Assembly (NCBI RefSeq): GCF_003704095.1
Contig: NW_020843660.1
Span: forward strand, 1-64,000
Length of the DNA stretch: 64,000 nucleotides
Reading direction: 5' to 3'
From: Pocillopora damicornis
Lineage: Eukaryota
Shown: piece by piece, positions 42 to 53,100 of the stretch
Position numbering within the stretch: the stretch's first letter is position 1
Layout of the letters: the number at the start of each line of letters is the position of its first letter
Made by a program: the position numbers and the translations under genes
Notes under the pieces: generated by a model
Seen by the model: the letters and a program-made list of their open reading frames with translations, nothing else
The model's database searches: none
What the model was told of the DNA's origin: nothing

Positions 42-847
42 CCGTAATTTCCGTCCATTTACCCGCGCGGCAGATTACCCGCTTCAGTCAATTTTTGCAA
101 TAACGAAAAAGAATTTTCAACAGATTACCCGTACTGGCAAATAACCCGCACCCAAAAACAAAGAAAACCGTCGACTCACACAAAGTTCCTTCATTGTTTT
201 TGTTGACATGATATCCTTTAGCGTGCGATTAATAAATTTTCACACTTTTTGTTTTCGATGTTTCAATTAGAATGATACCTCTTGCAAAGATCTGTTCTCA
301 AAAGAAATCGATACCCCGAGATCAACTGAGTCGGAGGAATCGCTTGAAATTGGAAAATACTCTTTAACTCAGAGTAGTGCTAGCTAAGAAAATTTCACTG
401 ATGCGTCGAAAATTCTGTCGCGCATTAATTCTGCGGCGCCACGGAATGAACACATCAGCACATTTTCCGTGTGAATTTCTCTGAAGCCAGCTTTTTCACA
501 ATTAAATTATTTAATTTTCAAGTTCACTACCCGTGTAAGTGAGAATTGTCTTTTGAACTAAACAAAGAATCAAGCTGTGAAATTGACAAGGTAAGAAAGT
601 TAGAGTACAAACAAGAGAAAAGCTTTGTCATCGAGTTTTGTATGTTTTCGATTTGCATCGGCTTTTATCATGAAGAGCATTTTGCACAGGTTTTTTGAAG
701 AGTATCTTGAGTGTATCTTACTATCTCTGTTATTTCCTGCATTTGGTTTTAAAACTATACCGGAAGCTTTTAAAATTATTACTACTACTACTACTGTTTG
801 TGGAAAAATTAACAGATTACCCCCGGGTAATCAGCTGGAAATTACGG
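42..847. mobile_element. Non-autonomous Tc1/mariner (pogo-like) MITE
   Basis: Inverted termini CCGTAATTTCC (42-52) and GGAAATTACGG (837-847), extended imperfectly by TTACCCG/CGGGTAA. TA on both sides (40-41, 848-849). Internal CAGATTACCC repeats at ~71, ~121 and ~813. No transposase ORF. Confidence 0.65.
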
Positions 848-1496
848 TAATACGAACACATAAAAAGTCTCGAATAGGATCTCCTCAGATATCCTACAAT
901 AATTGAGTAAGATCCAGTTTCAGATAGGTTCTATACTTAACCTAGAGCCTTGATGAGACAAAGTTCCAAATGTTGTTTTCAGCGCAACCTCGATCTTAGG
1001 AAAATAGTAAATCCATGTTTGTAAAAGATGTACCCCCATGCATTTTCTCATTTAGCCAAGCCTTGACCTATCGTGTATGGCTTCCAAGGCATTCATGGGA
1101 CTACCTTTTAAAATTGTTAAAAATCCTCAGGCTGTACGCCGTTCGACCGCCAAAAATGTTAGCGAAGTTAAAACAACTGACTGGGAGCCATGTAAGTCAT
1201 AACTTGTTTAAGTTTATAAATTTCAAAAAAACGACAAAACAGTTTTAGTGGGGATGGAAATCATGACAGGTACAGAGAAAAAAACAAAAGAACGATACTT
1301 CATACTTCGAAATAGGGAGCTTCTTTTCCTTCCACTTTTTTCTTTACCGTATAGTTCATTAGCACAAGAAACAAATGTGATCCAAATAGCAGGCTTCGTC
1401 ATCAATTTTGATCCGCTCTCATGCGTTTGATGAGTAATTCATTTCTAAGGGTAATTCTCTGTCGTTTGCATTCACAATTTGTGGCGATCTTGAAAC

Positions 1497-1657
1497 ATGA
1501 ATATGAGACTGATCTTCGCAGTAATGAACACTAACAGAGCAAAATGAAAATAAGGCCTGAAAAAAATTCAGGCCTGCACGGGATTTGAACCCAGTACCTC
1601 TGCGATACCTTTGCAGTGCTCCAGTATTGCCGAATTCACGAGTTCGAATCCCGTTCA
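1497..1657. repeat. tRNA-derived SINE-like repeat
   Basis: AGGCCTGAAAAAAATTCAGGCCT hairpin, followed by B-box-like GGATTTGAACCC (reverse) and GTTCGAATCCC. Resembles an abundant coral repeat. No complete cloverleaf. Confidence 0.55.
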
Positions 1658-4092
1658 TTAGAGTTGAGGGTAGAGATAAAATTTTGTAGAATAAAAGTCA
1701 TTTCAGTATATACAAAGTAGCATCATCTCTTACCTTCCAAGATCCAACGTTCTTTAGCGCCCAACTGTTACTCAGCCAAATGTGTTTTCTTTTGGTACCG
1801 TCTGGTAGCTATGGTTACTGAAGAAATTGTTTTTTTTCAAGCCAAGATGATCTTCAACATTAGAAAAGAACTTCCTTCTTCCTGTTTGGGCTCTTTGCAA
1901 AAAAGCAAGAATTCAACATAATGCAAAGGAGTGACTGGAGTAATGCCTCTTAGACTACAATGTAATACAGTTATTTCCTTGAAAGTGTCGCTGAACAATG
2001 TCTCCTTAAATAGAGCGAAAGAAATGTTTTAATTTAGTAAGAAAACCGAACAAATTTAGCAAAATGTTCTAGAGATTTACACTAACATGGAAAAATGGAA
2101 ATTTACAACTATGCACTTCTTAGCTTGCTAAATTTTAATTGGTCATTTACAATATAGTTTTTCCATGTTAATAAGACTGACAAGACAAACGCTTTTTTTT
2201 TGTTGCCGATCCACTATTTTCTGATTTATGATCTTTTACCGTATTTCCTACTGTCATTTTGTACAATAATATAAGATGAAAGTCTTGAACGGCTGCCCAC
2301 ACACTGTGCGTGTTTATCAACATTGCGAGCATAGAGTGTTTAGCCTTCTGATGGTAAATAGTTTGCTCAAACAGGTGTTCTTAAACAATTTTGCTTGATG
2401 TGCCAGTTTAGATAAATAAGCCCTCTAGAGAATGGAGCTGCACACTGCTTCAGACACAATATACACGGGTACATAAGATGCAATTATGGAAACTTCTTTA
2501 CTCAGAGCCGAACCGGGAAAAGAATCACGTTTTCGTCAAACTTTGGGTCGAAACTTACGTAATTTAAAAAATTAATTGTTTTGCTAACCGGCCGTAACCA
2601 AAAGTTGCATTTTTGAGGCTTAAAAGATCGAAAGAGTTCCGACCATTCGATTTATAACGTTTGCATTGTGAGACATACGCCCTGGGGTTACTTAGTGCGA
2701 CTGAAAAGAACCTCTCTGCAGTCTCGACCACTTAGTGCAAGACAGGAAGCATATTCGACCGACAATTATGAACTTCATCATTCTTTCCTTTGTTCTCCAA
2801 AAAATAAAAAATTTTGACTTTCCTTTAATATGAAGAAAGAAAATTAATGCGTTGAATCCAGTATTAACCTCATAATTCCTTTTTTTCCCGAAAATTGGAC
2901 ACTATCACCACTATCTATAAAAACGGCCGACGCTTTATGTACGGATTTATTTTAATTTAACGTTCTCACTTTTGCTGCCATCTTCTCTTTGAAATGTAAG
3001 GCAATGATTCGATCGGAATTACTTCGATTGACTGACAGAAAATTTTATAGGAGTTGACGAAAACGTTTCATGATGATATATTGATAAATTTCTCTCTTTT
3101 GCAAGGTGGAAAGTAGGAAAGCATTAAAATTGGTGAAATTCATCAAAACACTCCATTTAACCTCCTTTAGTCTTTTCTAGAAAACTTCAGAACTTTTAGT
3201 TTCCTCTCACCTGTTTCGGAAAATAATACCATTTCAATTCGGCTGGATTGCAAAAATTCGACATGAGACAAGCAGATTTTGGCTCTGTTTTGTTTGTTGG
3301 TTCTTTTTTTGTATTCTTCCTCAGCAGCATATTTAGTTTACCAAATTATTAGACTTTTGGCTTCATTTTCTCGTTATATCAACTCTAAATTCTATTAGAG
3401 GAAAAGGAACACGGATATTATAGCGGTTGTGAAACTGCACCACCCGAACCTTATCGCTGTTGAATTATCTTTCTCAGACTTCGAGTTCCTTTTTTTTTTT
3501 TTTGTTTTGACTGCAAAGACAAAGAACTAAAAACCACCAGATATTTCAAATGAAATTTACAAGCCAAAGGTAACCGAGGGTAAATGTACCCAGCCAAGAA
3601 CTCTTGAGCCAACCTCTTGAAGCATGCAAAACTCCAACAGCTTTCGACCAAGCTCCGAGAGGAAAGCGAGTTTTTGGAAGGAGTAAAAAATTAACTGGCA
3701 AGATTTCTGCACAATCCCATATTTCATGGCACATGCAGTTCTTGGATAGAGAAAACAAAGGCGAAATCAGTAGATTGCTTTTAAGACTACGGCTTTGTTT
3801 TACAATAGTATGGGGTAATACGGAAATCTTTCCAGAAACCTTGCAATATTTAATTGAATAGCGGTAAACGGAGCACACATGCATCACAGACTATGATAAT
3901 GCCTCAACCCCGTGTATTCATTCGAGGCTCATTGATAATGAGATGGAATCAATGGCCTCACATTCTTGTCGGAAGGTTCACCGAGAGCTTTGAAGAAGGG
4001 TTTATTTAAAGACCGACGTACCAAAATCGTTTCAGCTTTCAAATTAAGTTCAAATGGCTTTTTATGACCGTATAAAAATGTAAAGTATAAAA

Positions 4093-5230
4093 TATCACTG
4101 TCACTGTCTCCATCATAGTAATTGTTTCCACCACTATCTGTCACTGTTTTTGTTAGTCACTGTTAACGGATGATCTGCTAAAATGATGTTCGGCAAGACT
4201 TCAAATGAAGTATGTGTTTCGTTCTGTTAAACTTAAATATTCTTAGTTTTCACTCATATTTGTCACTCTTTAAACATAAGTTTAAGGCTATTTTCCTTGA
4301 CTAATGTTGTTAGCAATTTTGCAAAGACTGATAACCAAGGCTTTTAACTATAATGCTTATATAAAAGTTATCAATAAGTTTAGGTAGCAACTTTTGAAAT
4401 TTAGGTAGCAACTTTTTGCATTCTTGGCATTTATTTTTTGCAACTTTAGAAAATTCCAGTGAGCAACTTTACAGAATTTTACGTACACAATCAGACAGGC
4501 CTAGTCTCCTTCACTGTTTTTATCTGTTGTTGTCACTGTCAGTATTGTCATTTCACTGTCTGTTTTCTATCACTTTTATTAGCATTGTTACAGTAGTCAT
4601 TATTTTCCTCATCATGGTCACTGTCCCTGTCTATGTGAATGTCTCTTTCATTACCACTATCACTTTCACTACCACTGCTACTGTCACTTTCAATGTCACT
4701 ATCACTGTTTCCATCGCTATCACTGTTTCTTTCACTTTATTTTACAGTGTCACTGTCCCTCTATTGTCCCTCAATTTCCGTCACTGTCCCTTAGGATATT
4801 ATTTTCACTGTTTCTTTCATTTTTATGGTTACTTTATCTGTTTCCTTCACTGTCACTTCAAATATCTCTTTTAATCTTTTTGTCATTGCACTTTCTTTTC
4901 AAGTGTCTTTGTCACTCACCGTCATCATCTTTGTCACATTCTAGGTTGTTTTCTTTATCATTGTCATGGTCCTTCCTTTAGTCACACTCTCTGTCACTGT
5001 CTCTGTCCTATACTTCATCACTCTTATTGTCTCTCTGATTCTCACTATTATTATCCAGTATATTTTTCTTTCTCTGTTTTGTCATCATCATGTCACTCTC
5101 ATTGTCAGTGTCAGTGTAAATTTCATTGTCTGTCCTTGCCTCTGTAACTAGAAATTTTACTCGTATTGTCATTGTCACTGTCTATCTGACTATCCCTATA
5201 GCTGTTATTGTTGCTGTCATTGTTGCTGTA
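4093..5230. repeat. Degenerate (TCACTG)n-like minisatellite, interrupted at ~4165-4500 by an unrelated insert with AGCAACTTT repeats
   Basis: Dense TCACT/GTCACTGT motifs on both sides of the insert. Explains the spurious V/T/I-rich ORFs at 4416 and 4966. Confidence 0.7.
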
Positions 5231-14327: not shown

Positions 14328-17300
14328 TCAGGAATTGTTGTTCTTGTCAATTTTTGTACCAAGCTTGGGCACTTTTTCCTCTAAAGTTCCCTTCCTCGAT
14401 GACTTTTCCTTAAATGGCCCCTTCAACTTGTCAGTAAGACCTCTTTTCCAGACTTCACGAGCTGTTCTACCAATACTACGATTTTCCTGACGTTTAGAGG
14501 GCTGCTGTAGCGATGAAAAACTTTCTCTACATCGAGCAGAGTCCCGCTTAGAAAATCGCACTCTCCTGTGATTCTTCCTTGTTTTCAAACGCTGACCTGT
14601 ATCGTTGACACAGCTTATATCACCATCTTCCAGTTTAAAAGAATTGTTATTATTCTCACAGATGGAAGACTGTTCATTCACTGTAAGACACGTTACTGAA
14701 AGTTGCTCAGTTGCTGGAAAAAGATCGTCATGCGATGAGGTTGAAAAAGGCGAAGATTGGGTACTTTTCCATCTCCGAGAACATTTTCCTTTGATCCGCT
14801 GCGGTTTTGGGGATGGACCACTATCTTTAATATTTCCATTCTTCAGTTCTTTCATAACAGTTTGAGTATAGCTACAACATTCTTTTGACAAATTGTCCCA
14901 ATCACTTGGAGATCCACTTGCTTCTTTTGAAAATTCGTCTTTGAAATCGTTGCTTGATAAATCGAGACAAACGCCCTCCACACTACTTCCATCCGGTGAC
15001 AGTCGCCTTCCCATTCCCATCACACTCTCTTCATGGGACAAAATTGTAACTTGTTTATGCACGAGGTCTTCTTGACTTTCACAGTATTGGTGGCTTGAGC
15101 TGATGTCACTACCAGATACCTTCATGTGGCAAAGTTTTGCTAACGTAACTACTTGGCTCTCATGTTTGTGTCCAGACAGTGGGTTGTTTTCTTTGAAATC
15201 TTCTTTAGGTTCTTTCTGAGTGTCCTTGTATGCTACCGTCGTTGTGTAGCCGAAGTCGTTATCTGCCTTAGCAAGGAAAGATTTTAAATTATTATCTGTC
15301 TGATTTACTGGCGAAGTTATCATTCCCTCAAATGAACTATCGACTGAAGACGTATCTGAACTGGAATCCACCAAACTACCCTGCGAGCCGCACGAATCCA
15401 TCGAGTCACTGACGACAGAACCACCTTGGGAGAGTGCAGTTGCTGAATGGGTAAACACCAGTTGGCCACTGGCATCAACAGGTGGACCAGCTGCCTGTTG
15501 TGCTTGCTCATAAAGATTTACACCGGAAAAGCAAGGAAAGGCCGTGGCAGCTTGAAAAACTGGAAATAACTGTGGCTGAAGTTGGGCATGAGGCACAGAT
15601 GGAAGGCCTAAGCTTGGTGGGACTAAGTTAGAGAACATCATTTGATTTCTGTACTGGAACGGTGGCATAAAGACCTGTTGAGGATGCGGTGGTTGCATGA
15701 GGTGAGGTGCCATCACAGGTTGAACAGGAGTGGAGAAAGTGAAAGACGGGTAGCATGGTTTCAACAGAGGTAACGCGGGGTACCCTTGGTAGAAAGTTCT
15801 ATGTGGATTACCCTGCAGTGGCGGGAATGATGCTTGACTGTAATACAAACAGGGACCTGAAGGCTGTTGAGTTATCACTTCTCTTGCATTCCCTGCCAAA
15901 GGCAGCTGATTTGATTGCTGGTGAACTGTGTCAGGGGTATATCTCCGCTCCTCACCGAGGGGCGGTTGACGTGAAAATGCACGGTCGTCTACGGATTGGT
16001 CATCACTGGCACTGCTGCTCTCTGATGACAATTCAGCAAGGAAATCACCACGTGCCTGAATTGTACTCTCGGTGCTTGTAAGATCAGATGCAAAACCCTG
16101 ATTCATACCACAGCTTCCAAGGGAAGGGTTTTCTACCGGACTGGACGGTGGTAAAGCAGAGTTGGGTAAATGAGCACATGAAATTTCTTCCCATGAAGAA
16201 ATCAAACCATTGGTTCTTTCTACCGTTGAGCCGTTAAGACATGGGGGTTTGTTTGCCGAGCACGCTTCATGCATGAAGTAACTATTCGTATCAAAGATAC
16301 ATTTAGAGTTGCCTTGATCAGTTTCCTTCAAAGCCTGAAAACCACTACTTGACAGGTTCACAAGAGGAACGAAATAGTTGGTACTTGTCCTTACTTCATG
16401 TAAATAATTGCTAACATTTTCTTTCTCTTCTTCACATGTTATTTGATCATGTACCAGGGCATTTCCAGGAGACTGCTCAAAGTCCAAAGATGATGGGTGT
16501 GCATGACACGTGTCTCCGTCAGACCGAACAGCAGATGCCACAAAACTAGATTTCAGGGTACTTTCTTCACACGATTCAAACTGCACCTCAATGGCACCAC
16601 TAAGATTTGATTCGTTGACTTCAGGTTGCTCTTCGAAGCATGTTTCATGAGAAATTTCAGGTGATTTTGGAAGAGACCGATCATGCTCTGAGGGAAAATT
16701 CAGCACAACAGGTTTCACCGAATTACCTGGAGGTAGATCGCAATTCTGCTGTGAAGACTTCGTTATCTTGTTAGGATCGAAATTATCTCCTTCAGTCAGG
16801 TCTTCAAAGTGTGTTTCAAATGGTCCTTGCACAGCATGGACTGAAGGTACATTGTCAAAGACTGGACTTTCTTGTGTCGAACTAAGTTCCTTGCTCTTCC
16901 CTAGAGTATGTGCTTCAGGTTCATTTACACCAGTTACATTAGAATCACAATCTTTGCCATCGCACTCAACAGGAACGAGAATAGCAATGTCTCCTATAAG
17001 AACACTAGCGAACTTATGCTCCAGGTTTGTTGTGGACGAAGCGCCAGAAATTTCCGTAAGCTGTAACTTTGCTACTGAACATTCAGTTGGGGAGCAACAT
17101 CCATCAAAAGCTTGCTCCTTCAGCTCACTCTCTGGTTTACCTTTATCAGAAGACGAACAGGGAGCGGATGGTTTGTTTTTTGTAATGTAGTTGTCATTTA
17201 CAGAAGGATTTATTAGCTTGGACTGCCTCGGTTTGACTAGATCTCTTCTGTTGTCTTTTCCTGAAAAGGCGACTTCCTTGGAAAGCATGCCGTCTGGTTT

Positions 17301-20300
17301 CTTTTTTCTGAAAGATTTCCTCCCTTTGACAGTCTTTTCATCTCTTTGCTTTGGTGCATGAGGTGCTGAGTCAGTAGAACCCTTTCTAGCTTCAGCTCCG
17401 GAGGTTTTTCCCCGTGAACTCTTACTACCAACTTCAACATTTTGCATCTCAGACAGGGAATGTTCTCCTTCAGATTTGTGCGAGGAATGAGTTCTTTCAG
17501 ACTTTACTTTTCCTATTGGAGATTCAACGCCTATTTTATTCTTCTCTGAATGAGTGTACGATAAGTCATCAAGAACCAGGCTCAGAGGAGCAGGAGTAGT
17601 ACACTTCAGGGTGAAGCTACTTCGAGGTGCAGCTTTTACTAAGTCTCTCTCCCAGTCCTCAGTACCATTCTCTCTTTCAGATAACTTGCCATCTTCTAAG
17701 CTGTTCACACTCACCATGTTTGGTTGCGGTTTACTTTCAGCATGGTGACTTTCTGAACTCGCTTGGTTTGGTTTCTCTTCGTGCAACCTTGGGTACGCTG
17801 TTAAACCATGATTTTGAAGCCCTAGTCCACCGAAATGTAACGCTATAACCTTTGACACTTTCCTTTCAATACCATAGGTTTTCATGACTTCATAAAAATC
17901 CATAAAAGAACAGCAATCTTCAAAGATTCTTTTGAGAGTGTTGTACGTAATTCCCTCCTTTAAGAGTTTCTTTATAGACATATTCTTACTGCATGCATCC
18001 AGCTTACACAGTTTATCTAAATTGGTGAGAAAAAGAGATGGTTTACTAATCAGTTCTATAACTGCAAGATAAATACAGTTTGAAAGCGTGTAAGCAACGA
18101 AAACAAAGCTAGTGTACTCAGTATAACCAGATGTTAGATCACCACCCTCAGATGTCCATGTACATCTATTACATTTTTCATAGTTCAGAGCGCCCTCTAC
18201 GCCTCCTACTCCCAAATCCAAACATCTGAATCCATACCACTCACTAAGTAACGCATACCCATCTGACCAACCTTCTAAAATGGCTTGTTGCTGTTTTTTT
18301 CCACACTGAGAGATGTAATACTCCAATCTACAAACATAAATTTTAGTTCATGATAAATATTAAATACATTTCCATAATATCTCCTTTGTTATTGAAATAA
18401 AAATGATGGACTTGCTCCATTTCAAAACCAGAATTGCCAAGGACTTATATATGTAACTACTTTGGAGAAGACGCATGTTCTAGAATCCACATTATTTTTG
18501 TTGCCTCCATTCCACAGTACATGAATATTTTAAAATTTACTGATAACTGAGTATTGAGACTCAACCCATAATCAAATTGTTTGAAAATTGTGTTCAAATG
18601 AGCTTGAAACTCAATAGTGAAAGCTGCTTTCTCCAATAAAAAGGTACCTAAAATAAATTCACCACAGGTCAAACTACACGCAAGTTGACTATACCCAGGA
18701 GAAGGGACAAAACCAACCTCAATCAAATCTAAGAGTACATGGCTTTTGAAGTTAGTAGAAAATGACACTAGCTTTACTTTCCCTTCATACAATCTGGCTT
18801 CTTCTCTTTGGACAGCACAATTCTTAGTTCAATATGAAAGTCGTACTCATTCTGATTCCCTTCAGACATTCCCAAGCAACAGTTTATGGTGGAACAAACC
18901 TTTCTTTGGTAGATGAATACTTCAAGAGGTGAAGTAGTTTGCGGAGTGGTGTCTGTGTGAAGATCTTAACCATTCCATCTACATCACCCATGGCTCTGTG
19001 TCTGTCTGAAAAGCCAAAATGGAACTTTGCTAAAATACATTTTCTAGTAATGGTTTAACACTAAAGTTTACAAGAGTACCACTGCAACTTAATTTTCCGA
19101 AATTGATTGTAGAGATTCTGAGTTAACCAAAGCTAAAAAGTCAGAGGAAAGTGCATTAACACACAGATAGAGTAAGGGATTTGATTGGATGGTTAACAAC
19201 ACAAAATCAGGGAAAATGAATGTCATGCAAATAAATAATCTAAGAGACAAATTATATTTCTTCTCGCACTAGTTCCAACTGTTTTGTTCCATGAATTATG
19301 TTTCAAAATGATAGTTTGGGTACTGCACAGGAGAGGCCAACAAAACTATGTTACATGGGGAACCAGACAGCAAGAAACCAACATCAACCAAATGTTTCAA
19401 ATCAGTCCACAGTTTGTTGAGGAGAGAATGCCAAATAGTAAAATTTGAGTAACAATGCTAGGTTGAAACACATCAGCAGTCCATATAAAGGCAAACCTAG
19501 TTGGTCATGTTCTGAATTCATGAATTGTTCAAAAATACCTCTAAGAATACTACACATGTATACATCACACCTCCTTTGACAGTATTTACCTTTAAAATTT
19601 TTCTTTGGAAAGAATTTTCTATACAGCGCCTCAAGGGACAGTCTTGTGTTGGCCAACAACTTCTCCCCATTGTCTTTCAACTAAACAAAAGGAGAGTTCA
19701 AAGAGATGTAATCAACATTTCCTTCACATCTTTTTAAAGCAGTTTTGAAGGTTTTGATTCATTTTTATGCATGACTTTCAATATGCTCATGACAACATTT
19801 TCATGAAAAATACATGCAGATAAATAAAAAGATAAATTAAAACGAGCTTTTACATATCTGCAAGCAAAGTGTTAGATTGTCTCTTGTGAACATATAAAAT
19901 ATAAAACAGATGTATGTTGTGCATGCCAAGGTATTTCTTGAAATGGGTAGGGAAGGAGGCTCTTTCCTCTCTTTACCTCAAAAGGTACATCATATGATTA
20001 TTTGATCATTTGTCCTTCTTCTACATTAATACTAACAGTTAAACAAATTTCAATGATATTGAGATAGAGAAAGATGTTTTTTGTCTTTTCACGAGAGTAG
20101 GACAAAGAAAAATTCTAGGTCCCCATGAGGAATTGAATCTCAGACCTTCAGATTGCATGATCCAATGCTCTATCACTGAGCCTCAGAGACTCCACAGTGA
20201 GTGAAGTCTATTATAAAGTTCAGATGAAACAAAATTTACCATCTCTCTTGTTCTATTCACATGCAATGATATCATTGGGTAAATATGTTAAGTTATTGCG

Positions 20301-23300
20301 ACTCATAACAATTTATAGGTACCTGCAGTTTCAGGTTAGAAAAAGATGGAACAATTTCCTAGGTGTTACTTTAAGGTTTCCAACGTTCACATCCATTAAT
20401 TTTACAAAGTATTCCTCATCAAAATCAATACACCCACAGGTCCTTACAGTTAAACCAAAACAATAGGTTCAATAAAAATTTAAAGCGCAAATTATGTGTA
20501 CATTTTGTTTCATTTCTATCCTCTGTTCAAATTTTACTTTCCTTTGTTTTGGCATGTGGCACTGCATGACAAATAGTCTAAAATCAAAGAAAATTAAAAT
20601 TTGAACCACAACATAAGTGCATCACCTACACAAGCATAACTGTTTTAACTAACTGATTCAGTGCAAGTTCACACAAGATTTGCAACCAAACCCTGCACCA
20701 ACCTCATGACAGAAAACCAAAGTATCTGCAAAATGAACATTGTGCTGGGTCAAAATTGAGTGATGTAATCCACACCTCTCCATGTTGTTCAGTAAAATCA
20801 AGAAGTCAAATTGATAGCCATGGTGTGCACACAACACTGAAAAACAAGAATAGAAATAGTGTTAGTAATCAGTTGTAAGGAAACATCTACCTGATATTTT
20901 AATTGCTGGGTATTTTTACTTTTGTATGCTACTGCATTTGTTGGGTTACATGATACTTGCAGTACCTGGACACCACTGGTAAATTTCTCTCTATGAGAAC
21001 CCCTGAGAAAAATACATTTAAATTTAATCACACAGGGAACACTACCATGTTTGATTTCTAGCCCAAGAACCGCTATATCAAGTACTTTACCTGGAAAAAA
21101 ATGCTTCCCATGTTTCTTTTTGGCTAATTTCACCATGTCATCTATCCAGGAAAGAAATTTAAGAAAAATCTCCCTGAAGAATGGCTTGTTGCTTAGATCC
21201 TCCTGTGACAGACCACAATCTCTGGCAGCTAGACATGATGTGAGTACACAATAGGAAATAAAAGTTGTTTAGACTATTAAATAAAAAGACTACAGTAACA
21301 TCAAAAAAATATTTTTCTCTACCTCTTGACATTCTCCTCCCCTATCACAACCTAACTATAAGTTGTCAGTAAATGAGAATGGAGTCTCTGTATGGATAAA
21401 ATGAACATAACACATCATGGAAAGTCTGTCTGTATGGTATTTCCCCTCCTGTTGGTTTGTATCAGAAATCTTACTTCTTTACTGCCTCACTCATCAATTA
21501 TTAATACTACCAATTTGTGTATGTTATTGTACCATACAGACAGACCTCCTTGAAGTATTCTATGTATATTGTAAGTGTATACCCCATAGGTAAATATTAG
21601 TAGCATATAACCCACAAGTGAATAGTGTATTTTCACATGTACTGATAGGCTAGTTAGGAAGTCAATAGCAAGTGCTATTCACCTCTGAGGACCTGGTAAG
21701 ACAAAATTGCCGATCAAGAGTTTAATGTTCGACCATTTGCTTATAATGGAAGGAAATAAACTTATTTTCTTGTTATCTGAGTGGTATGTACTGCAGCTCA
21801 GTAAATATCCAGTACTATTCACCTCCACTTTGGTAAATAATTGTTAAATATTGTAAGAAGAAATTCTCTCTTGATCACTCATGGACTTTAAAGGGTTAAA
21901 GTGACAGTGCAAATACGACATATGTCTGTAGACTGTATATGTCCACTAATTTTGGTTCTGATTACAGAAAACATAAAAATTCTTATTTTACCACCCCATT
22001 CCATATATCAATTAAACTATAAAAAAGTTAACTAAATCATAGTATTGGCTGTAAAATTAGTTTATGTTTAAAAAACATTTAGAGTGCAGTGTAGCAAAAA
22101 CTGTAGCTAAAGTTCTCAAAACACAGGTGGTGAATTTGCCCTTTAATTCCCATGAATGACCAAAACAGAATTTATCCTCACAACATCAATACAATATCAA
22201 GAAGATAAGTGATGAAAAAAGAAAAATATCAATTAGGGGTTTAATAGTTGATTCAATATCAAATTCGCCAAACCATCATTATGAGAACTGTTTGCCATGC
22301 TGTAAGGAGAATTACCAAAGAGATCTTAGGAGTGAAAAAGTAAAAAGCTTAAATATTGTGTTTGTTATCATCAATATTGAACTCTTTGAGATAACCACCA
22401 ATAAAACTAAATTTGGAATTACCAGGCTTCTGTACATTTCTTCCTGTCATTTGGCAGAAAATAAATAACCTATACTCTCCTGTTTTAAAATTTAGGATGA
22501 AGAAGCTCAAAATTTTTATCTGTAGTATTAAGAAGTGCGACAACACCTTGAGAAAAAAGGAAAATAATAGGTCATTTCCCTCCAAATCAATTAGTTAACT
22601 AAATCACAGTTCGTTTACTAACAATTATATTCGCAATGCACTCGAGCTCTTCCATGGGATTAAAAAACGAAAAAAGATTCGTTGCACCCACAGCAAATTT
22701 AAAAATCATATCATCGCCTTCTTACTTTAAAATAAATAGACCACTCGAGAAGAAGGTAAAGACCATGAGAAAAGGAGCCGGTGTCGAAAACAGGATTGAG
22801 ACTAGTTCAGAAATACATGACGAAGCCTGTGTTTATGGCGTTGGCAATTAACATACCGGAAATACCAACACACATTGTAAAAGCCTGAACGAGTCGAGAC
22901 AGTTTCTAAAGGAGCATTTTCGTGAGAGGGAGTCTTAATTGTCTTCAAATTCACTAAATGTGAAATTTTTAGATCGAGAGAAAATAAGGAAATAATTTGA
23001 ATTCCGTCGAATCACCAGACATGCGCTTCTTCGCACGCGCTGTTATTCTTGGCAAATTGTTAGACGCTGTTCAGATGTTGAAGGTTTTCTTTCCCATTTC
23101 TATGACTCTTTGGCTCTTTTCCAGTCCGTGCAAAAACTTTACAGAAAAAAATTTCTTCACACATAGCTTTTTCTTTGAAATGCAGCGGCGTCACAAAGGG
23201 CACAAAGTTGCTGACGGTGTAGATTTATCGTGTCGATGTTATGCAAGAAGCGCATAAACAACGTTCACTTACCGAAGGCACACAGCGGTTGTTTGGTGTT

Positions 23301-23456
23301 TATCAGCGACTGAAAAGAACCTTTCACAACATCAGGATAGCACCTTGCAGCTATTTCAATGATATCGCCACAGTAAACATTTCCATTAGCGGCTTCACTA
23401 TCATAAAATATCATCAACGGTTGAACTTTCGCGTCTTCTTTCTCCTTAGCTGCCAT
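14328..23456 (-). CDS. DEDDh 3'-5' exonuclease (PML-like/TREX-like) with PML-C-like segment and long disordered C-terminus; 1550 aa, or 1480 aa if 18062-18271 is spliced
   Basis: Exons: 23456-23273, 21228-21091, 20836-20703, 19680-19590, 19005-18900, 18327-14328. GT-AG, 4653 nt, phases consistent. ExoI IFYDSE...DIIEIAA; ExoII VLCAHHGYQFDFLIL...FADTL; LSLEALY; ExoIII RHRAMGDVDGM. Then SKNMSIKKLLKEGITYNTLKRIF (PML-C-like) and an S/P/Q-rich tail. Confidence 0.85.
20062..20223. mobile_element. tRNA-derived SINE fragment in an exonuclease intron
   Basis: CCCCATGAGGAATTGAATCTCAGACCTTCAGA...GCTCTATCACTGAGC is a reverse tRNA-like B-box/A-box arrangement typical of a coral SINE. Confidence 0.5.
22136..22343. 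mobile_element. ~200-bp MITE of a TTAA-flanked (piggyBac-like) family, degenerate
   Basis: CCCTTTAATTCCC...GGAGTGAAAAG termini and a TGTAAGGAGAATT motif shared with the copies at 26845, 28338, 31455 and 63422. Confidence 0.5.
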
Positions 23457-23542
23457 GTTCCTTTTTCCCGGGCTTGTAGTAATCAGCCTCGTCTCCAGGG
23501 TGACATAGTCATCCCAGGCTCACTCGTACGCGGCATTTCAAG
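23457..23542. promoter_or_regulatory. Very compact bidirectional promoter/5'-leader region between the exonuclease and CCS
   Basis: Divergent ATGs at 23456 (-) and 23543 (+), 86 bp apart. Locally GC/CpG-richer than the flanks. Confidence 0.6.
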
Positions 23543-44969: not shown

Positions 44970-45351
44970 GTTCTAGGTACACCTCAAGATCCAAGTTACA
45001 AATCAAAAAACTGTTATGATACCGCTGGTTATAAGCACAGTGGTTTCCATTTTGGCTGATTTCAATTCTGAGCCCACGAAAATTTGGCTTCTTTTCAGCG
45101 GTATAACCACCGAATAATAACAAGGGGCCAAACTATGTTATCGTCCTCTCAGACGCCAGCGAACGCGCCAGCGTTAACTCGCCACGTTGCCGGACGTTCA
45201 TCAGCGGACCGCTGGTGTGCAACACTTACTTGTTGGTTGGGGATATCTCAATGACAATTGATCATTCGTCAAATAAACTCAGAAAAAGCCTTATCCAGAA
45301 ACAGACGCAGCCGTCAAAAATTACTGTTAGTACGGGAAATCCTTGAATATA

Positions 45352-47978
45352 ATGGAGACTTCAGCCGAACAAGCTGAAGAAATCGAAGCGTTAATAGCTA
45401 TTTATGATCAAGATTTTATTGTCATCGACGAAGCTAACAGAATCTATGAAATCCGCATTTGCCACCAAAGTGATTCCTGGTGGTCAGCTACTCTGCAAGT
45501 CCTTTTACCGCCACAATACCCAGACCGGGTTCCCCCTGTATTCGAAATTCATTCCGCCTGGATGAGTGATGCTGATATGTTTGAAGCCTCAGACTTGTTA
45601 TATACCATTTACCGAGAACATCAAGGTCAGATTATAATTTATCAGTGGGTAGAGGCCTTGAGGACTTTCATTGATAAAAAATTTAATGATCAAGAACCGA
45701 TTGATGCCAAAGGATCGAGAAGTGATGTTTCCCTTAAATATCACGGTAAGCCAATACTTTTTGTCCGTTTTTATTGGGAGGTAATAATTACAAAGAAAGA
45801 TTTTGGAAGCTAAGAGTAGGGATGATGCAATTACTCGATATTATTTCTTAATTTATGCATAGGCAAAGTCCACAGAATGAAATTTCTTTGTTTGCGAGCC
45901 TAGTTGGAGGTGGCTTGAATTAGTTTCAGTAATTAATATAACAAAAGTGATCATAATAGATATCAAAAGGTAAGTATACAAAACTGACATGCATGAGTGA
46001 TGCAAATCAATTTGTTTTAATTTCAAACATCTTATTTTGAGAATTCTAATTGCGGTGCCGATGAAATACTCCTAAAGTTTTCACATCAACAATTTTTAAC
46101 TATGGTGATATCTCTTTCTGTAGTATTCAATTTTCCAGCAAAGCCCCTCAAATTCATTGGAACATTGCACTTCAAAATAAATAATTTGATTCAATATTTA
46201 GAGTAGTCTACATTAGAATTGATCCACTTTAAGTTTGTAGATAAGGTATGTGGGGAAATTATGGTCATTCTAGAGACTAATAGCAAGACTGTGATATTGA
46301 TATTTCTGTGTAATGTTTTTGAGACTTACAACTGTAAGGGAAGGTACGTTTTTTCTTGGGGGGGGAGGGCTGGGGAATTTTGGTATTTTTTCCAAAAGAA
46401 AGTGTTGGCCCTCCCTCATGTTTTGATTAAAAAACTCCTGACCCCCCCCACTTTTAGGTGACTGACAAAAGTGTGACCCTCCCCTCACTACCACATGGTA
46501 TGCTCTATGCCATAGAAACCTCAGAACATTTTTCGACATTTTGCTTGTATTTTGCTTTGGAGCTACTACAAAAGGCTAAACAATGAGTTGAAAGAATTTT
46601 CCCTCGCCAAGGAAATGCTCCCAAAAGAAAGTCAAGAAAGCAGAAGCAGAATCGCCGTAAAGCCGATAAATGCAAATGCCAACGCTACGCAGAAAATGAA
46701 AAGTCAATTAAAACAAGAATTTTAAACATTGATGAAGAAACTCTGAATGACGAAGACTATGTAATAGATCATGGAGATTTGGAGATGAGGGTTGTGAAGG
46801 CTCATATTGGAAGTAAGATTTTGACTTCAATTGTGCAGGAAAAACAGACAAACATTCCGCTAGCCTCTGACTCAAATCCAGTGACAGTGACAGCAACAGG
46901 GTAGAGGGCATTGTTGGATCTTCTAGTAACTCTTCAGAGCTTAATGACTCAGGAGATCAGGCAGTGGATAGACAACAGCTGGAACAAGAAACCATACCCG
47001 AGTCAAGTACGTCATGATACGGATGGAAAAGGACATGAGTACTCCGAGAAAATTATGTGCCATGGAATAATATACATGTAGACACCCAGTAACCTTATAA
47101 AACTAGTATCTGCACCGAATTAAAAGAAACAAGTTGAAAAGAAAATACTTAGTCTGTTAAAGAAAAATGGAAAATAACATCACAAAAATTTCCATTAAAA
47201 ATTCTGGAAAAGGTGTGACCCTCCCCTTGAATAGCTGAAAAAGAGGGTATGGCCCTTCCCCTTTGGTGCTCACTTTCACTGATGACCCTCCCCTCTGAGG
47301 CCCCAGCCCTCCCCCCCCCAAGGAAAAACGTACCTTCCCTAATACAGATCCTTGTTTGCAGCGTTGACTGTTTTTCTTTTCTTTTTTTTTTTGATCATAT
47401 AATCTGACTTAGGTGAGAACATCAAATTATCAGAAACAATTGAAGATGGTGATTCTGAGAAGGATCAGACAGCAAATCTCAGTTGCAATGGTGAGGATGC
47501 TTTGAAATTAATCAGGAGTGAAAGATCAGACCTGTGCCCAGAGATTACTCATGGGGAACCTTTTACAGACAGGAAAAGTACTTTTCAAGCACATCTTGCT
47601 CATGTTATAATACTGGATCAAGTTTCAGGAGTACTACAAGAGTTAAAGAAAAACCGGAAAGTAAACAATGCTACCCACAATGTTATGGCATATAGAATAT
47701 TTTGTAAGGACCGAAACTGTTTTCTTCAAGACTGTGATGATGATGGTGAGGCAGCAGCGGGCTCAAGACTTTTACACCTGTTACAAATATTAAATGTCAG
47801 AGATGTTGTTGTTGTGGTAACCCGTTGGTATGGTGGGATTCTTTTAGGGCCTGACAGATTTAAGCATTATAACAACTGTGCACGGAATTTAATGAAAGAT
47901 GCAGGCCTCATAGATATCAGTCCACAGTTTAAAGAATCAAAACTCAAAAGTAGATTTAAACCAGGGAAAAGACAATAA
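45352..47978 (+). CDS. IMPACT: Protein IMPACT (RWD + UPF0029 ancient domain), ~319 aa, 2 coding exons
   Basis: Exons: 45352-45745 and 47413-47978; 960 nt. RWD: EEIEALIAIY, QYPDRVPP, IIYQWVE. C-domain: DRKSTFQAH, ATHNVMAYR, DCDDDGEAAAGSRLLHLL, VVVVTRWYGGILLGPDRFKH. Confidence 0.95.
46338..47339. mobile_element. 1.0-kb non-autonomous PIF/Harbinger-type DNA transposon in the IMPACT intron
   Basis: TIRs of ~37 bp: GGGAAGGTACGTTTTTTCTTGGGGGGGAGGGCTGGGG and CCCCAGCCCTCCCCCCCCCAAGGAAAAACGTACCTTCCC. TAA duplicated at 46335-46337 and 47340-47342. Subterminal TGACCCTCCCCT repeats. Confidence 0.82.
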
Positions 47979-49874: not shown

Positions 49875-50161
49875 AAAATTTACTCTTACTCTGATGTCTT
49901 GTACAGCTCATTTTATTCTAACTAAGTCAAAGTGGGATATTTCCATGAAGAAGCTGCCTACCTGGCTTAATCCTGTAATTTGGTGTCAAAACCACAGAGA
50001 TAAAGAAGGAAAAAAATGCTGCTAAAATATTGATATCACACAGCAGAGAGCAATCACGATTTATGACTAGTCAAACCTACTTCACAGCTTCTAGAATAAC
50101 ATATAATTTTATTGAATTCTTGTTAAATGGATGACAGGCTTACATGACTTCTGGAGCTTCT

Positions 50162-53100
50162 TCAGCCTTTATTCTCTAAAGTATCAATTAAAAATTGTAT
50201 TCTTTGAATGGCTGACTTGCGAGCCACTCGTACATCTTCTAATCCATCTGTCTGTACTTTATCAAGATCCAAAATCAGTTTTGTTAGTTGTTCATCAAGA
50301 TAAATAAACTCTCTGTCACCTTTAAAAAAGCAATATCATTAAATATATAATCAATCAAAGAATTAAGAATTGAAAGAGTCTCAAAATTGATGCATCATTA
50401 TCTTTTAAACAAATAATTTGGAGAGTTTGTTTGAATTGAAATTTCTCCTCTATTCGAACCCAGAGATATAAAAAATATCTTACTGAGTTTGAGGTCTGTA
50501 ACGTAAGATACTGATCCAGTGTCTGCTTGGATTTTTGTACCAAGTGCTTTGCACATGAACCCTAAAGCTGAGGGGAAAAAAACTTGGCCAATAACTTACA
50601 GGGCTGACCCTGCACTTGGTTGGCAAGAGGTATATACTGGTAGCAATCCTCTCTAGAAGTCCTTCAGTTAACTTTGCAACAAAACAATTTAAGACAATCC
50701 TGATCTCCAGCTGTACATTCAACTGCTGGGAGTCTTTAAATGATGACAATACAAGCACCTAACCCACTTATCCTCTGATCTGAGCTTGATCTCAAGTTAT
50801 CTAATACAATTCACAATCCACATGTAACTGAGTTGAGAAATCAAAAGGAAGACAAAACAATATTTAACTGACCTCTGGTTCCTGAAAAAGATAAAACTCT
50901 TGGTTCCAATTCCTCTGCATGACAAAGCAGTGTATCGATTGAATTAATTTTAGCATCTGATAAAGGTGACCTTCGTGTTGTGTATTGACTCCGAGGTTCA
51001 GGCTGGTGATAACCTGAGCCATACATCTGAGGAGCTGACTGTGCATAGGGTTGTCTGCCTGGGAAGCCTGGTTGTTGACCCAGGTTTGTGTATCCTGAAC
51101 CAACTGCATAAGAATTAGGAGGGTAACCAGGTGGTGGATGTTGGGGTTGTGACTGCCGCATCATTGACTGTTCAGTTGCATATGACACTGGAGGAGCACC
51201 TGGGTAAGGAGATGTGTGACCATACACAGAGGTTGGGGCAGGATTTGCAAATGGAGGAGCCCATTGGGTAGCCTGGGATGGAGCAGTTTGAGCATAGGAC
51301 TGAGTTCTTCCATCTATCATTTGTAGTGGTTGTCCCACAGGAGTTGGGCCATAGCCTTGATTTTCTTGTTTCACAGTTCTATTTCCTGGGATACTTTGTG
51401 TATGAGGTGAGGAGTAATTATAATTATTTTGGTATGGATGATGATGATGATGATAGGATTGTGCTCCAGGTGACTTTGGTTGTACAGGGGAGGGTGGCAT
51501 TACTTGCTGCTGTTGCTGGAGCTGTGAAGTAGCAGCACCCACTACAGATGGTATTGGTGGCTTTCCTGAAGGCTGCACTTGATTAGGAACCTGTCCTGGT
51601 GTCTGATAGGCTTGATACCCTCCTGGTCCTGTTGCCTGCATTGTCTGAGCATTAGGTTGTGGTGGACCCTGGCCTTGATTCTGAGGTGAAGGTTGATATG
51701 GTCGTACCTGGTATGGTTGACCAGGAGCTGATGTTGGAGTTTGGTATGCTTGGCTTGTTCGCGAGGGAGGCAAGGGACTCTGCACAGGCTGACCAGGGTA
51801 AAGTTGGCTTGGATTCAAAGACTGAGGTTGATAAAACTGATCAGGATTTGAAGCAGGCATCTGATATGGTTGACCTGGATATGGTGTTGCTTGATATTGT
51901 TGACTTGATTGACGAAGAACACCAGGTTTTGCTGACCCACCTAAGGCCGACACAGAATTAACAGCAGGGAATTGATATGCCTGACTGGTGTTCTGGGATG
52001 AAATTTCATAAGTTGGACCAGCAGCAGACATTGGTATCTGATATGGTTGACTAGAATCTGATCTCTGAGTCTGCTGTGGTTGGCCTTGAATCATTGGCTG
52101 TGCCTCATAAGGTTGGGAAGGACTTGGTCCTGGTACTGAATAAAGCGGTCCTCCAGGAGCCATCTGATTTGGTTGACCGGGGATCACTCGGTTTACTTGA
52201 CTAGATGACATTTGGTTTGGCTGACCATGTGGCATTTGGCTTGGGTGACCATGTGGCGTTTGGTTTGACTGACCAGAAGGCATTTGGTTTGGGTGACTAG
52301 ATGGCATTAGATTTGGCTGACTGAAAACCATTTGACTTGGCTGACTAGATGGCAGTTGGCTTGGTTGAGGAAGTGGCATTTGGCTTGATGGAGCTGGAGC
52401 TTGGTTTTGTTGATTTGATAATATCTGACTGGATTGACCAGGTAACATGTGATTTAAATGACCAGGAGGCACTTGGTTTGGCTGGTCAGGTAACACTGGA
52501 AAAGGTTGACCAGGGTTTGACACTGGGCTTTGAGAAACTTGCCCTGAAATAGGAGGAGGCATTTGGTAGAGTTGACCTGGAGACGATGGTACTGGTGTAG
52601 AGTATTGCTGACCTGACGGCAACTGGAATGTTTGGGATGGATTCTGGTTTCCCAAGGATCCGCCAGGTCCCTGTCAAATAGAAAAGAATTTCAGTTCAGT
52701 GAGCAATCCACTGCTGAGAAGTGGTAACCATGCTTTTCACTCCAAAGTGAAAAATTATAGGATGATTCATGATGATTGTGTTTGATATTCCTAATCCTAA
52801 ACCTAAGTTATACTTACTAATGCAATCTCAATTTCTCTTTAAGAAATTTAACAGGTAGTTTAATTATCTTATAATTCAAGGAACTAAATACTGGAATCAA
52901 ACTATGTCCTGTTTGTGCTGATTCATGAAGGACAAATCTTGCATCACTGGTATAAATCATGGTATGCAAGAAAGCTCTTGACTTCTAGTATCAAAATATT
53001 TTAATTATGGTCACAACTGTTCTGCTGTGGCTGAGTTTAGATTTTCTTGACTTCCACTCATAGCAAATCAACCACCATAATAAGAACTGTGCAGGTTTTG

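Follow-up and report, generated by a model that had tools for sequence, protein, structure and literature searches.

A spliced, single-copy gene in the coral Pocillopora damicornis that specifies a probable DEDDh exonuclease with a SAM-like helical domain and a long disordered tail

What kind of protein, if any, is specified by the minus strand between positions 14,328 and 23,456 of the Pocillopora damicornis DNA analysed here (the window: 64,000 nt, contig NW_020843660.1, positions 1 to 64,000)? An initial annotation had described the region as an uncharacterised PML/TREX-like exonuclease fused to a disordered tail of about 1,150 amino acids (aa), with five small exons spliced in phase onto an open reading frame (ORF) of 1332 aa. 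DEDDh enzymes such as TREX1 and the fish PML and PML-like exonucleases degrade cytoplasmic or retroelement DNA, and the locus raises the questions of whether these exons form one gene, to which branch of such nucleases the product belongs, and whether it is likely to be active. The answer that we consider likely is that this is a single-copy, spliced and expressed anthozoan gene, the 1,465-aa product of which consists of a probable active 3'-5' exonuclease, a SAM-like helical bundle and a disordered tail, and belongs to an unnamed clade.

Of the runs in which the stretch was found, sixteen were RNA and four DNA-type, from ten studies in all; contigs of four of the RNA runs, from four studies (X1, X5, X7 and X10), were placed on positions 17900–23500. 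These data are assembled contigs rather than raw reads, and establish the spliced form, not the transcript ends or the level of expression. The elements of the gene, in the direction of transcription and with the runs supporting each splice joint, are as follows.

23273–23456, minus strand: coding exon E1, with the ATG at 23456 and the ExoI motif FYDSE; joint 21228|23273 in four runs.
21091–21228, minus strand: coding exon E2, the region of helix alpha1 after the first three strands, AARDCGLSQEDL...HGKHFFP; joints on both sides (21228|23273 and 20836|21091) in four runs.
20703–20836, minus strand: coding exon E3, with the ExoII motif AHHGYQFD and the invariant D of HFADT.
19590–19680, minus strand: coding exon E4, LKDNGEKLL...FPKKNFK; joint 19680|20703 in four runs, 19005|19590 in three.
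18900–19005, minus strand: coding exon E5, with the ExoIII motif HRAMGD; RNA joints on both sides.
18272–18327, minus strand: coding exon E6, part of a long connector helix, RLEYYISQCGKKQQQAILE, and the first 18 codons of the 1332-aa ORF; joint 18327|18900 in four runs, 18016|18272 in three.
18017–18271, minus strand: intron 6, 255 nt, in frame, stop-free, with GT..AG ends; skipped by an RNA joint.
14331–18016, minus strand: coding exon E7, the end of the connector helix, the SAM-like bundle and then the tail.
14328–14330, minus strand: stop codon, read from the DNA.
13973 and 13571, minus strand: AATAAA signals, 357 and 759 nt downstream of the stop codon.

The seven exons produce a coding sequence (CDS) of 4,398 nt, specifying 1,465 aa plus the stop, and the introns are all of GT-AG type with matching phases. 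An in-frame stop lies upstream of the ATG, at which the orthologues also start. All six joints occur at exactly the predicted bases, their ends reading CT..AC on the plus strand and thus GT..AG on the minus strand; four were found in all four runs and two in three of the four, X5 being without two of the six. A contig of 3,172 nt from X7 runs from deep in the large exon to E2, so that the exonuclease exons and the large exon are parts of one transcript, and a contig of 713 nt from X10 links E5, E4, E3, E2 and E1. The initial annotation had counted junctions that fail to connect these exons as refuting it; the RNA connects them. The gene is real, is spliced as modelled, and is transcribed. The five small exons of the initial annotation are correct, as is their in-phase joining to the 1332-aa ORF (at 18327, one base upstream of its first codon), but intron 6 had been missed, hidden within that ORF because it is in frame and without a stop. 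The 85 residues that it would encode are not present in the orthologues. Intron 6 is retained in two low-depth contigs (17989–18301), at a depth of 6–9 compared with 51–78 for the spliced form in X1 and X7; these may represent unspliced precursor, and the retained form, if translated, would add 85 residues to the helix that connects nuclease and SAM-like domain.

The window exons align colinearly, with no gaps at their boundaries, to full-length orthologues from five other anthozoans, and the gene model is therefore far beyond chance. A search with the large exon returned 55 proteins, most of them ORFs called in prokaryote style from coral metagenomes and covering no more than this exon. Three were full-length, all with the Pfam domain RNase_T: P0002 (1,443 aa, 71% identical, encoded by an intronless Logan contig of 5,456 nt) and two 'uncharacterized' proteins of Oculina patagonica and Montipora foliosa. 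In per-exon local alignments to P0002, E1 is identical at 54 of 61 positions, E3 at 38 of 44 and E5 at 33 of 34, while E2 is colinear with residues 62–106. Searching with the N-terminal 300 residues added proteins of Nematostella vectensis (LOC116613833; 1,474 aa, 54%), Dendronephthya gigantea (999 aa) and Paramuricea clavata, and scoring the fragment against all 1.84 billion representatives gave 234 relatives. Among those that align over the helical module as well as the nuclease are proteins of the hydrozoan Hydractinia (546 aa), the crinoids Antedon and Anneissia (707 and 854 aa), Acanthaster (766 aa), Holothuria (683 aa) and Ptychodera (328 aa), the last automatically named 'DNA polymerase III PolC-type-like'. 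The next-closest relatives are about 300 aa long, and none carries a protein name. The anthozoan proteins and their named relatives appear to form a distinct, unnamed clade, with long tails in Anthozoa and shorter ones in the hydrozoan, the echinoderms and the hemichordate. The label 'uncharacterised' holds for every occurrence, both in database names and in the literature searched, where searches by orthologue locus names found no paper, nor any on cnidarian PML/TREX-like nucleases. Oculina patagonica has, on the same chromosome-scale contig as its orthologue, a 205-aa protein (P0060, LOC144665499) that matches just the first half of the nuclease domain, at 72% identity, and is a truncated paralogue or partial duplicate; no such copy was found in the genome from which the window derives.

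The same data bear on the possibility that the locus is a transposon-borne or transposon-derived ORF, or an artefact that stitches unrelated ORFs together. A precedent of sorts exists elsewhere in this genome, where a Mutator-like transposase ORF is immediately followed by an ORF combining an exonuclease (EXO) domain with PML_C; decayed copies are also present. Against such an origin, all exons of the present gene occur once, at one locus only (genome of 234 Mb in 4,393 contigs), its six introns are of conserved phase and confirmed by RNA, orthologues of the same architecture extend from octocorals to Nematostella, and no transposase or integrase domain was detected by Pfam in the window exons or the full-length orthologues. 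A transposon ORF, which the initial annotation had itself raised as an alternative, is scarcely credible here, as is a gene-model artefact.

A complete DEDDh set had been proposed for the N-terminal part, with D and E in FYDSE, D in AHHGYQFD, and H and D in HRAMGD, and all five codons are present in the window: D at 23400–23402 and E at 23394–23396 (FYDSE, D to E spanning 23402–23394), D at 20805–20807, and H at 18998–19000 and D at 18983–18985 (HRAMGD, spanning 19000–18983). An alignment of 29 relatives shows invariance, or conservation of at least 90%, at D18, E20, H111, G113, D117, D144, H184 and D189 (numbered as in P0002), and the window protein carries all eight. The ExoII motif does read AHH instead of AHN, as had been remarked, but this means little, as the position is H, Y, G or N among the orthologues. 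Single window exons gave nothing useful against Pfam and PDB, being too short to score, and statements on family and fold use as a proxy the intronless transcript L001 of a related coral (CDS 319–4650), the first 300 residues of which are about 88% identical to the window exons. Over L001:319–1218 the full RNase_T profile (PF00929) is matched at 3.3e-9 (37.9 bits; gathering cut-off 24), and the Oculina, Montipora, Nematostella and Dendronephthya proteins match it also. NCBIfam models for DnaQ/PolC epsilon were matched at 2.5e-9, far below their cut-offs. The AlphaFold2 model of the orthologue N terminus has a mean predicted local distance difference test score (pLDDT) of 92.9 and an RNase H-like alpha/beta fold, for which the top structures in Foldseek were TREX2, Plex9.1, TREX1 and Exuperantia. 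The expected DEDDh fold is thus supported by both profile and model, with the nuclease domain beginning at about residue 13. When the 300-aa N terminus was predicted as a homodimer, the score was 0.00, which speaks neither for nor against dimerisation.

Which member of this structural group is closest is less clear. A profile (A6), which combines the relatives with names from cnidarians, echinoderms and a hemichordate with three unnamed close hits, was scored against PDB. The bacterial PolC exonuclease (2p1j) came out at E 1.6e-13, TREX2 at 1.6e-8 (profile positions 110–202 only), TREX1 at 3e-6, the Plex9-type chain 9l8b at 2.5e-5 and Plex9.1 at 0.05–0.1. The best sequence scores, then, are those of bacterial DnaQ/PolC-type proofreading domains, over the ExoI half, but only the first ~90 residues align well, and the coral protein has no polymerase context and is specified by an intron-bearing animal gene. 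Among solved animal proteins TREX2 scores best (0.011 with a single-sequence query, rising to the profile value above), followed by TREX1, with Plex9.1 at only 0.05, and it could be argued from this that the gene is a cnidarian orthologue of TREX1/TREX2 with extra C-terminal sequence and no special relation to the C-terminal exonuclease domain of PML, Plex9 or Exuperantia. The TREX scores are nevertheless weak, the sequence similarity being marginal and exceeded by that of the PolC exonuclease. Moreover, TREX1 and TREX2 are without the connector helix, the SAM-like domain and the 1,150-aa tail, all three of which are found in the coral protein, the first two being conserved across the family, and the anthozoan profile aligns through the helical domain to a Plex9-like protein bearing PML_C (P0065, see below). 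TREX itself is an obligate homodimer, and TREX1 has a membrane anchor at its C terminus. Orthology with TREX1/TREX2 of this kind is regarded as unlikely, in favour of a separate clade within the TREX/Plex9/Exuperantia group. As a description of the nuclease domain, 'TREX-like' would on sequence be at least as fair as 'PML-like'; of the earlier label 'PML/TREX-like', membership of this group of DEDDh exonucleases stands, while a choice of PML over TREX cannot be made on the nuclease domain.

The segment following the nuclease domain had been compared by the initial annotation with the helical region C-terminal to the exonuclease fold of PML-like proteins. In the window it is completed by exon 7.

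17826–18016, minus strand: end of the connector helix and four-helix SAM-like bundle, at the start of exon 7, CSKNMSIKKLLKEGITY...ALHFGG.

In the AlphaFold2 model, the last strand is followed by a helix of 24 residues (214–237), for which exon 6 and the first part of exon 7 code, and then by four short helices at 243–298. Folded alone, the helical module reached a pLDDT of 87.9; by itself it gave no Foldseek match below E 2, and an exhaustive structure aligner returned SAM-like matches that were weak. Searches with the orthologous N terminus, the isolated module and the window's own module found no match to PML_C (PF25244), SAM_Exu (PF18609) or Exu_RNase_H_like (PF22123) at E ≤10. Of 34 relatives, P0065 and the member clustered with it were the only two to match PML_C. 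In P0065, which comes from a metagenome and has 393 aa, Exu_RNase_H_like and RNase_T are accompanied by a sub-threshold PML_C; against PDB this protein finds Plex9-type chains (8e-12 to 6e-10) and Exuperantia (0.012), and no TREX. It matches residues 6 to 268 of the coral fragment by BLASTP at 2e-13, and when a profile built from anthozoan sequences only was aligned to it with hhalign (97.6%, E 3e-12), the alignment ran through the EXO domain and the connector helix as far as the first SAM helices, reaching the stretch of P0065 that matches PML_C. The link to PML_C is transitive only. A protein language-model search, which can be taken as a lead only, placed clusters with RNase_T, PML_C and Exu, mostly of molluscs, nearest. 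The models, the weak structure matches and the profile alignment together indicate a separate domain that appears to resemble the SAM-like part of Exuperantia and of PML-1's PXL domain; the PML-C-like match that had been expected was not obtained directly from Pfam, and arises only by way of P0065.

The EXO/SAM arrangement of PML-1 is shared, among solved structures, by Exuperantia alone, and in both Exuperantia and the PML-1 PXL the DEDD residues have been lost, with the SAM-like part helping to bind nucleic acid (PMC13659232). The PXL structure was not among our structure matches, and the PDB copy used may lack it. Several points count against the reading that the coral protein is an active EXO-SAM nuclease. 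Its family shows no direct match to Pfam PML_C or SAM_Exu by sequence; its fold and family were read from an orthologue with about 88% identity to it in this domain; and intact motifs are no proof of activity, because Exuperantia and PXL, the sole solved EXO-SAM proteins, are inactive binders. The coral protein could by the same token be a pseudonuclease, its EXO-SAM part only binding RNA or DNA and its tail building ribonucleoprotein granules. That alternative is also considered improbable: Exuperantia and PXL bind RNA or DNA without the DEDD residues, whereas the coral family retains the complete DEDDh set from Cnidaria to echinoderms and a hemichordate, and conservation over such a distance argues for selection on catalysis. 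Neither Exuperantia nor PXL shows a detectable direct sequence match to the coral family.

An active 3'-5' exonuclease is the probable form of this protein. Its DnaQ/RNase_T-type DEDDh domain, of the TREX, Plex9 and Exuperantia structural group and with the five catalytic residues in place, would be expected from fold and residues to act by two-metal-ion hydrolysis, taking nucleotides singly off single-stranded DNA or RNA at free 3' ends. The connector helix leads, in the model, into the SAM-like bundle, which probably holds or selects the substrate and, by analogy, probably helps bind nucleic acid. The short conserved motifs of the tail probably act in localisation, in the binding of partners or in regulation. 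From the analogy with TREX1 and with PML/Plex9 of fish, it can reasonably be guessed that the protein clears stray or retroelement nucleic acid; a role in genome defence or innate immunity is speculative.

The PML/Plex9 family has been described in jawed vertebrates only (Mathieu et al., PMC10123124). The DEDDh domain of fish PML is C-terminal, and Plex9.1 and Plex9.2 are PML-like exon 9 exonucleases (PMC10123124); the coral nuclease differs in being N-terminal and followed by a giant tail, with no RING, B-box and coiled-coil (RBCC) region. Pfam finds RNase_T alone in the full-length orthologues, and none of the RING, B-boxes or coiled coil of PML (TRIM19); with the upstream in-frame stop and the shared start, this agrees with the earlier statement that RING and B-box are absent.

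The remainder of exon 7 specifies the tail, in which two conserved islands were recognized.

14331–17825, minus strand: low-complexity tail of about 1,150 aa, the rest of exon 7 (from 100-aa composition windows).
17562–17663, minus strand: conserved island TEDWE...PRSSFTLKCTTPAPLSLVLDDL, with the pattern TEDWE...FTLKCTTPxPLSLxxDDF.
16965–17015, minus strand: conserved island KFASVLIGDIAILVPVE with an acidic flank, a hydrophobic motif of beta-strand type.

The serine-rich tail with a P/Q-rich block described previously is evident in the composition: serine makes up 14.4%, and the block at about 15495–15773 has 32% P+Q in one 100-aa window, with a single acidic residue. Basic clusters occur at 17295–17327, 14766–14810 and 14547–14585, and basic-rich windows near exon 7 residues 201–300 and 1101–1200; the clusters that had been likened to nuclear localisation signals (KGRKSFRKKKP, KTRKNHRR) are conserved only in part. 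No Pfam domain was found in the tail, either in the window exon or in full-length orthologues. Overall identity to orthologues is 43% in Oculina, 29% in Montipora, and about 20% (down to 19%) in Nematostella and octocorals, and from such comparisons the tail appears to be fast-evolving, with few short conserved motifs. In the TEDWE island, the W, F, P, S and D columns are invariant in eight anthozoan sequences. The KFASVLIGDIAILVPVE island follows the pattern [ILVF]x[ILV]GD[ILVF][APT][ILV]x[ILV]P, which was present in all anthozoan orthologues fetched, including those of octocorals and Nematostella, and in no hydrozoan or echinoderm relative checked. With its acidic residues it looks like a SUMO-interacting motif, a resemblance only. 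SUMO-consensus sites, which the initial annotation had put forward, were rejected as evidence: the three psi-K-x-E sites observed are at chance level (shuffle mean 2.4, with 43% of shuffles reaching three), and they are not conserved beyond the closest relative.

Such a tail invites a bolder proposal, namely that the protein is a catalytically intact, pre-vertebrate relative of the EXO-SAM module from which the dead versions in Exuperantia and PML-1's PXL later arose, and that its tail, through the strictly conserved SUMO-interacting-like motif, builds bodies that depend on SUMO or on partners and break down nucleic acid of retroelement or foreign origin. This is unlikely, and condensate formation as such is speculative. 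If the body-forming nuclease were real, it would be a cnidarian functional counterpart of fish PML/Plex9, and would show the transition from nuclease to scaffold.

The reading preferred here, a probably active EXO-SAM exonuclease with a long tail, is of value as an evolutionary and experimental entry point, and involves neither a new fold nor a new mechanism. The gene and its hydrozoan, echinoderm and hemichordate relatives would be EXO-SAM-type proteins with an intact active site, missed by Pfam PML_C and labelled 'uncharacterized'. In them, a module of which only dead versions are known structurally is open to test in a probably active form, and they may bear on the origin of the nuclease-like part of vertebrate PML. 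The Nematostella orthologue LOC116613833 would be a tractable model for the role of such nucleases; to our knowledge, cGAS-STING is present and interferon absent in animals such as Nematostella. The 2026 PXL structure paper calls for evolutionary and biochemical study of EXO-SAM proteins in other organisms (PMC13659232).

Outside the window, the same genome carries an ORF (contig C3984, 245664–246371; L008:1165–1872, plus strand) with Exu_RNase_H_like, RNase_T and a sub-threshold PML_C, and its matches to Plex9-type chains in PDB have E-values of 7e-9 to 2e-8. Immediately ahead of it on the same strand is an ORF that matches the C-terminal end of the Mutator-like transposase profile (PF20700, 1.3e-28). 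Other contigs have three weaker matches, of which two contain internal stop codons. From this arrangement and the decayed copies, nucleases of this group can travel with mobile elements, and PML_C-type nucleases in corals may travel with, or derive from, such elements.

Within the introns, a dispersed repeat of about 170 bp occupies 20060–20235 (intron 3), with 973 first-look candidates in the genome and scored copies that are about 78–88% identical; it accounts for the high RNA contig depth and many loose ends at 19957–20330. A second stretch of high depth, rich in loose ends, lies in intron 1 (about 21830–22390) and is probably another repeat. Elsewhere in the window, a 604-aa ORF on the minus strand (50841–52655), for which Pfam gave no match at E 0.01 or better, lies where G+C is raised (0.417 in 50001–52000). 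On the plus strand, two ORFs at 45343–45813 and 47502–47978 carry RWD (4e-20) and UPF0029 (4e-32) domains, and because this is the domain pair of IMPACT, they are probably two exons of the coral IMPACT orthologue.

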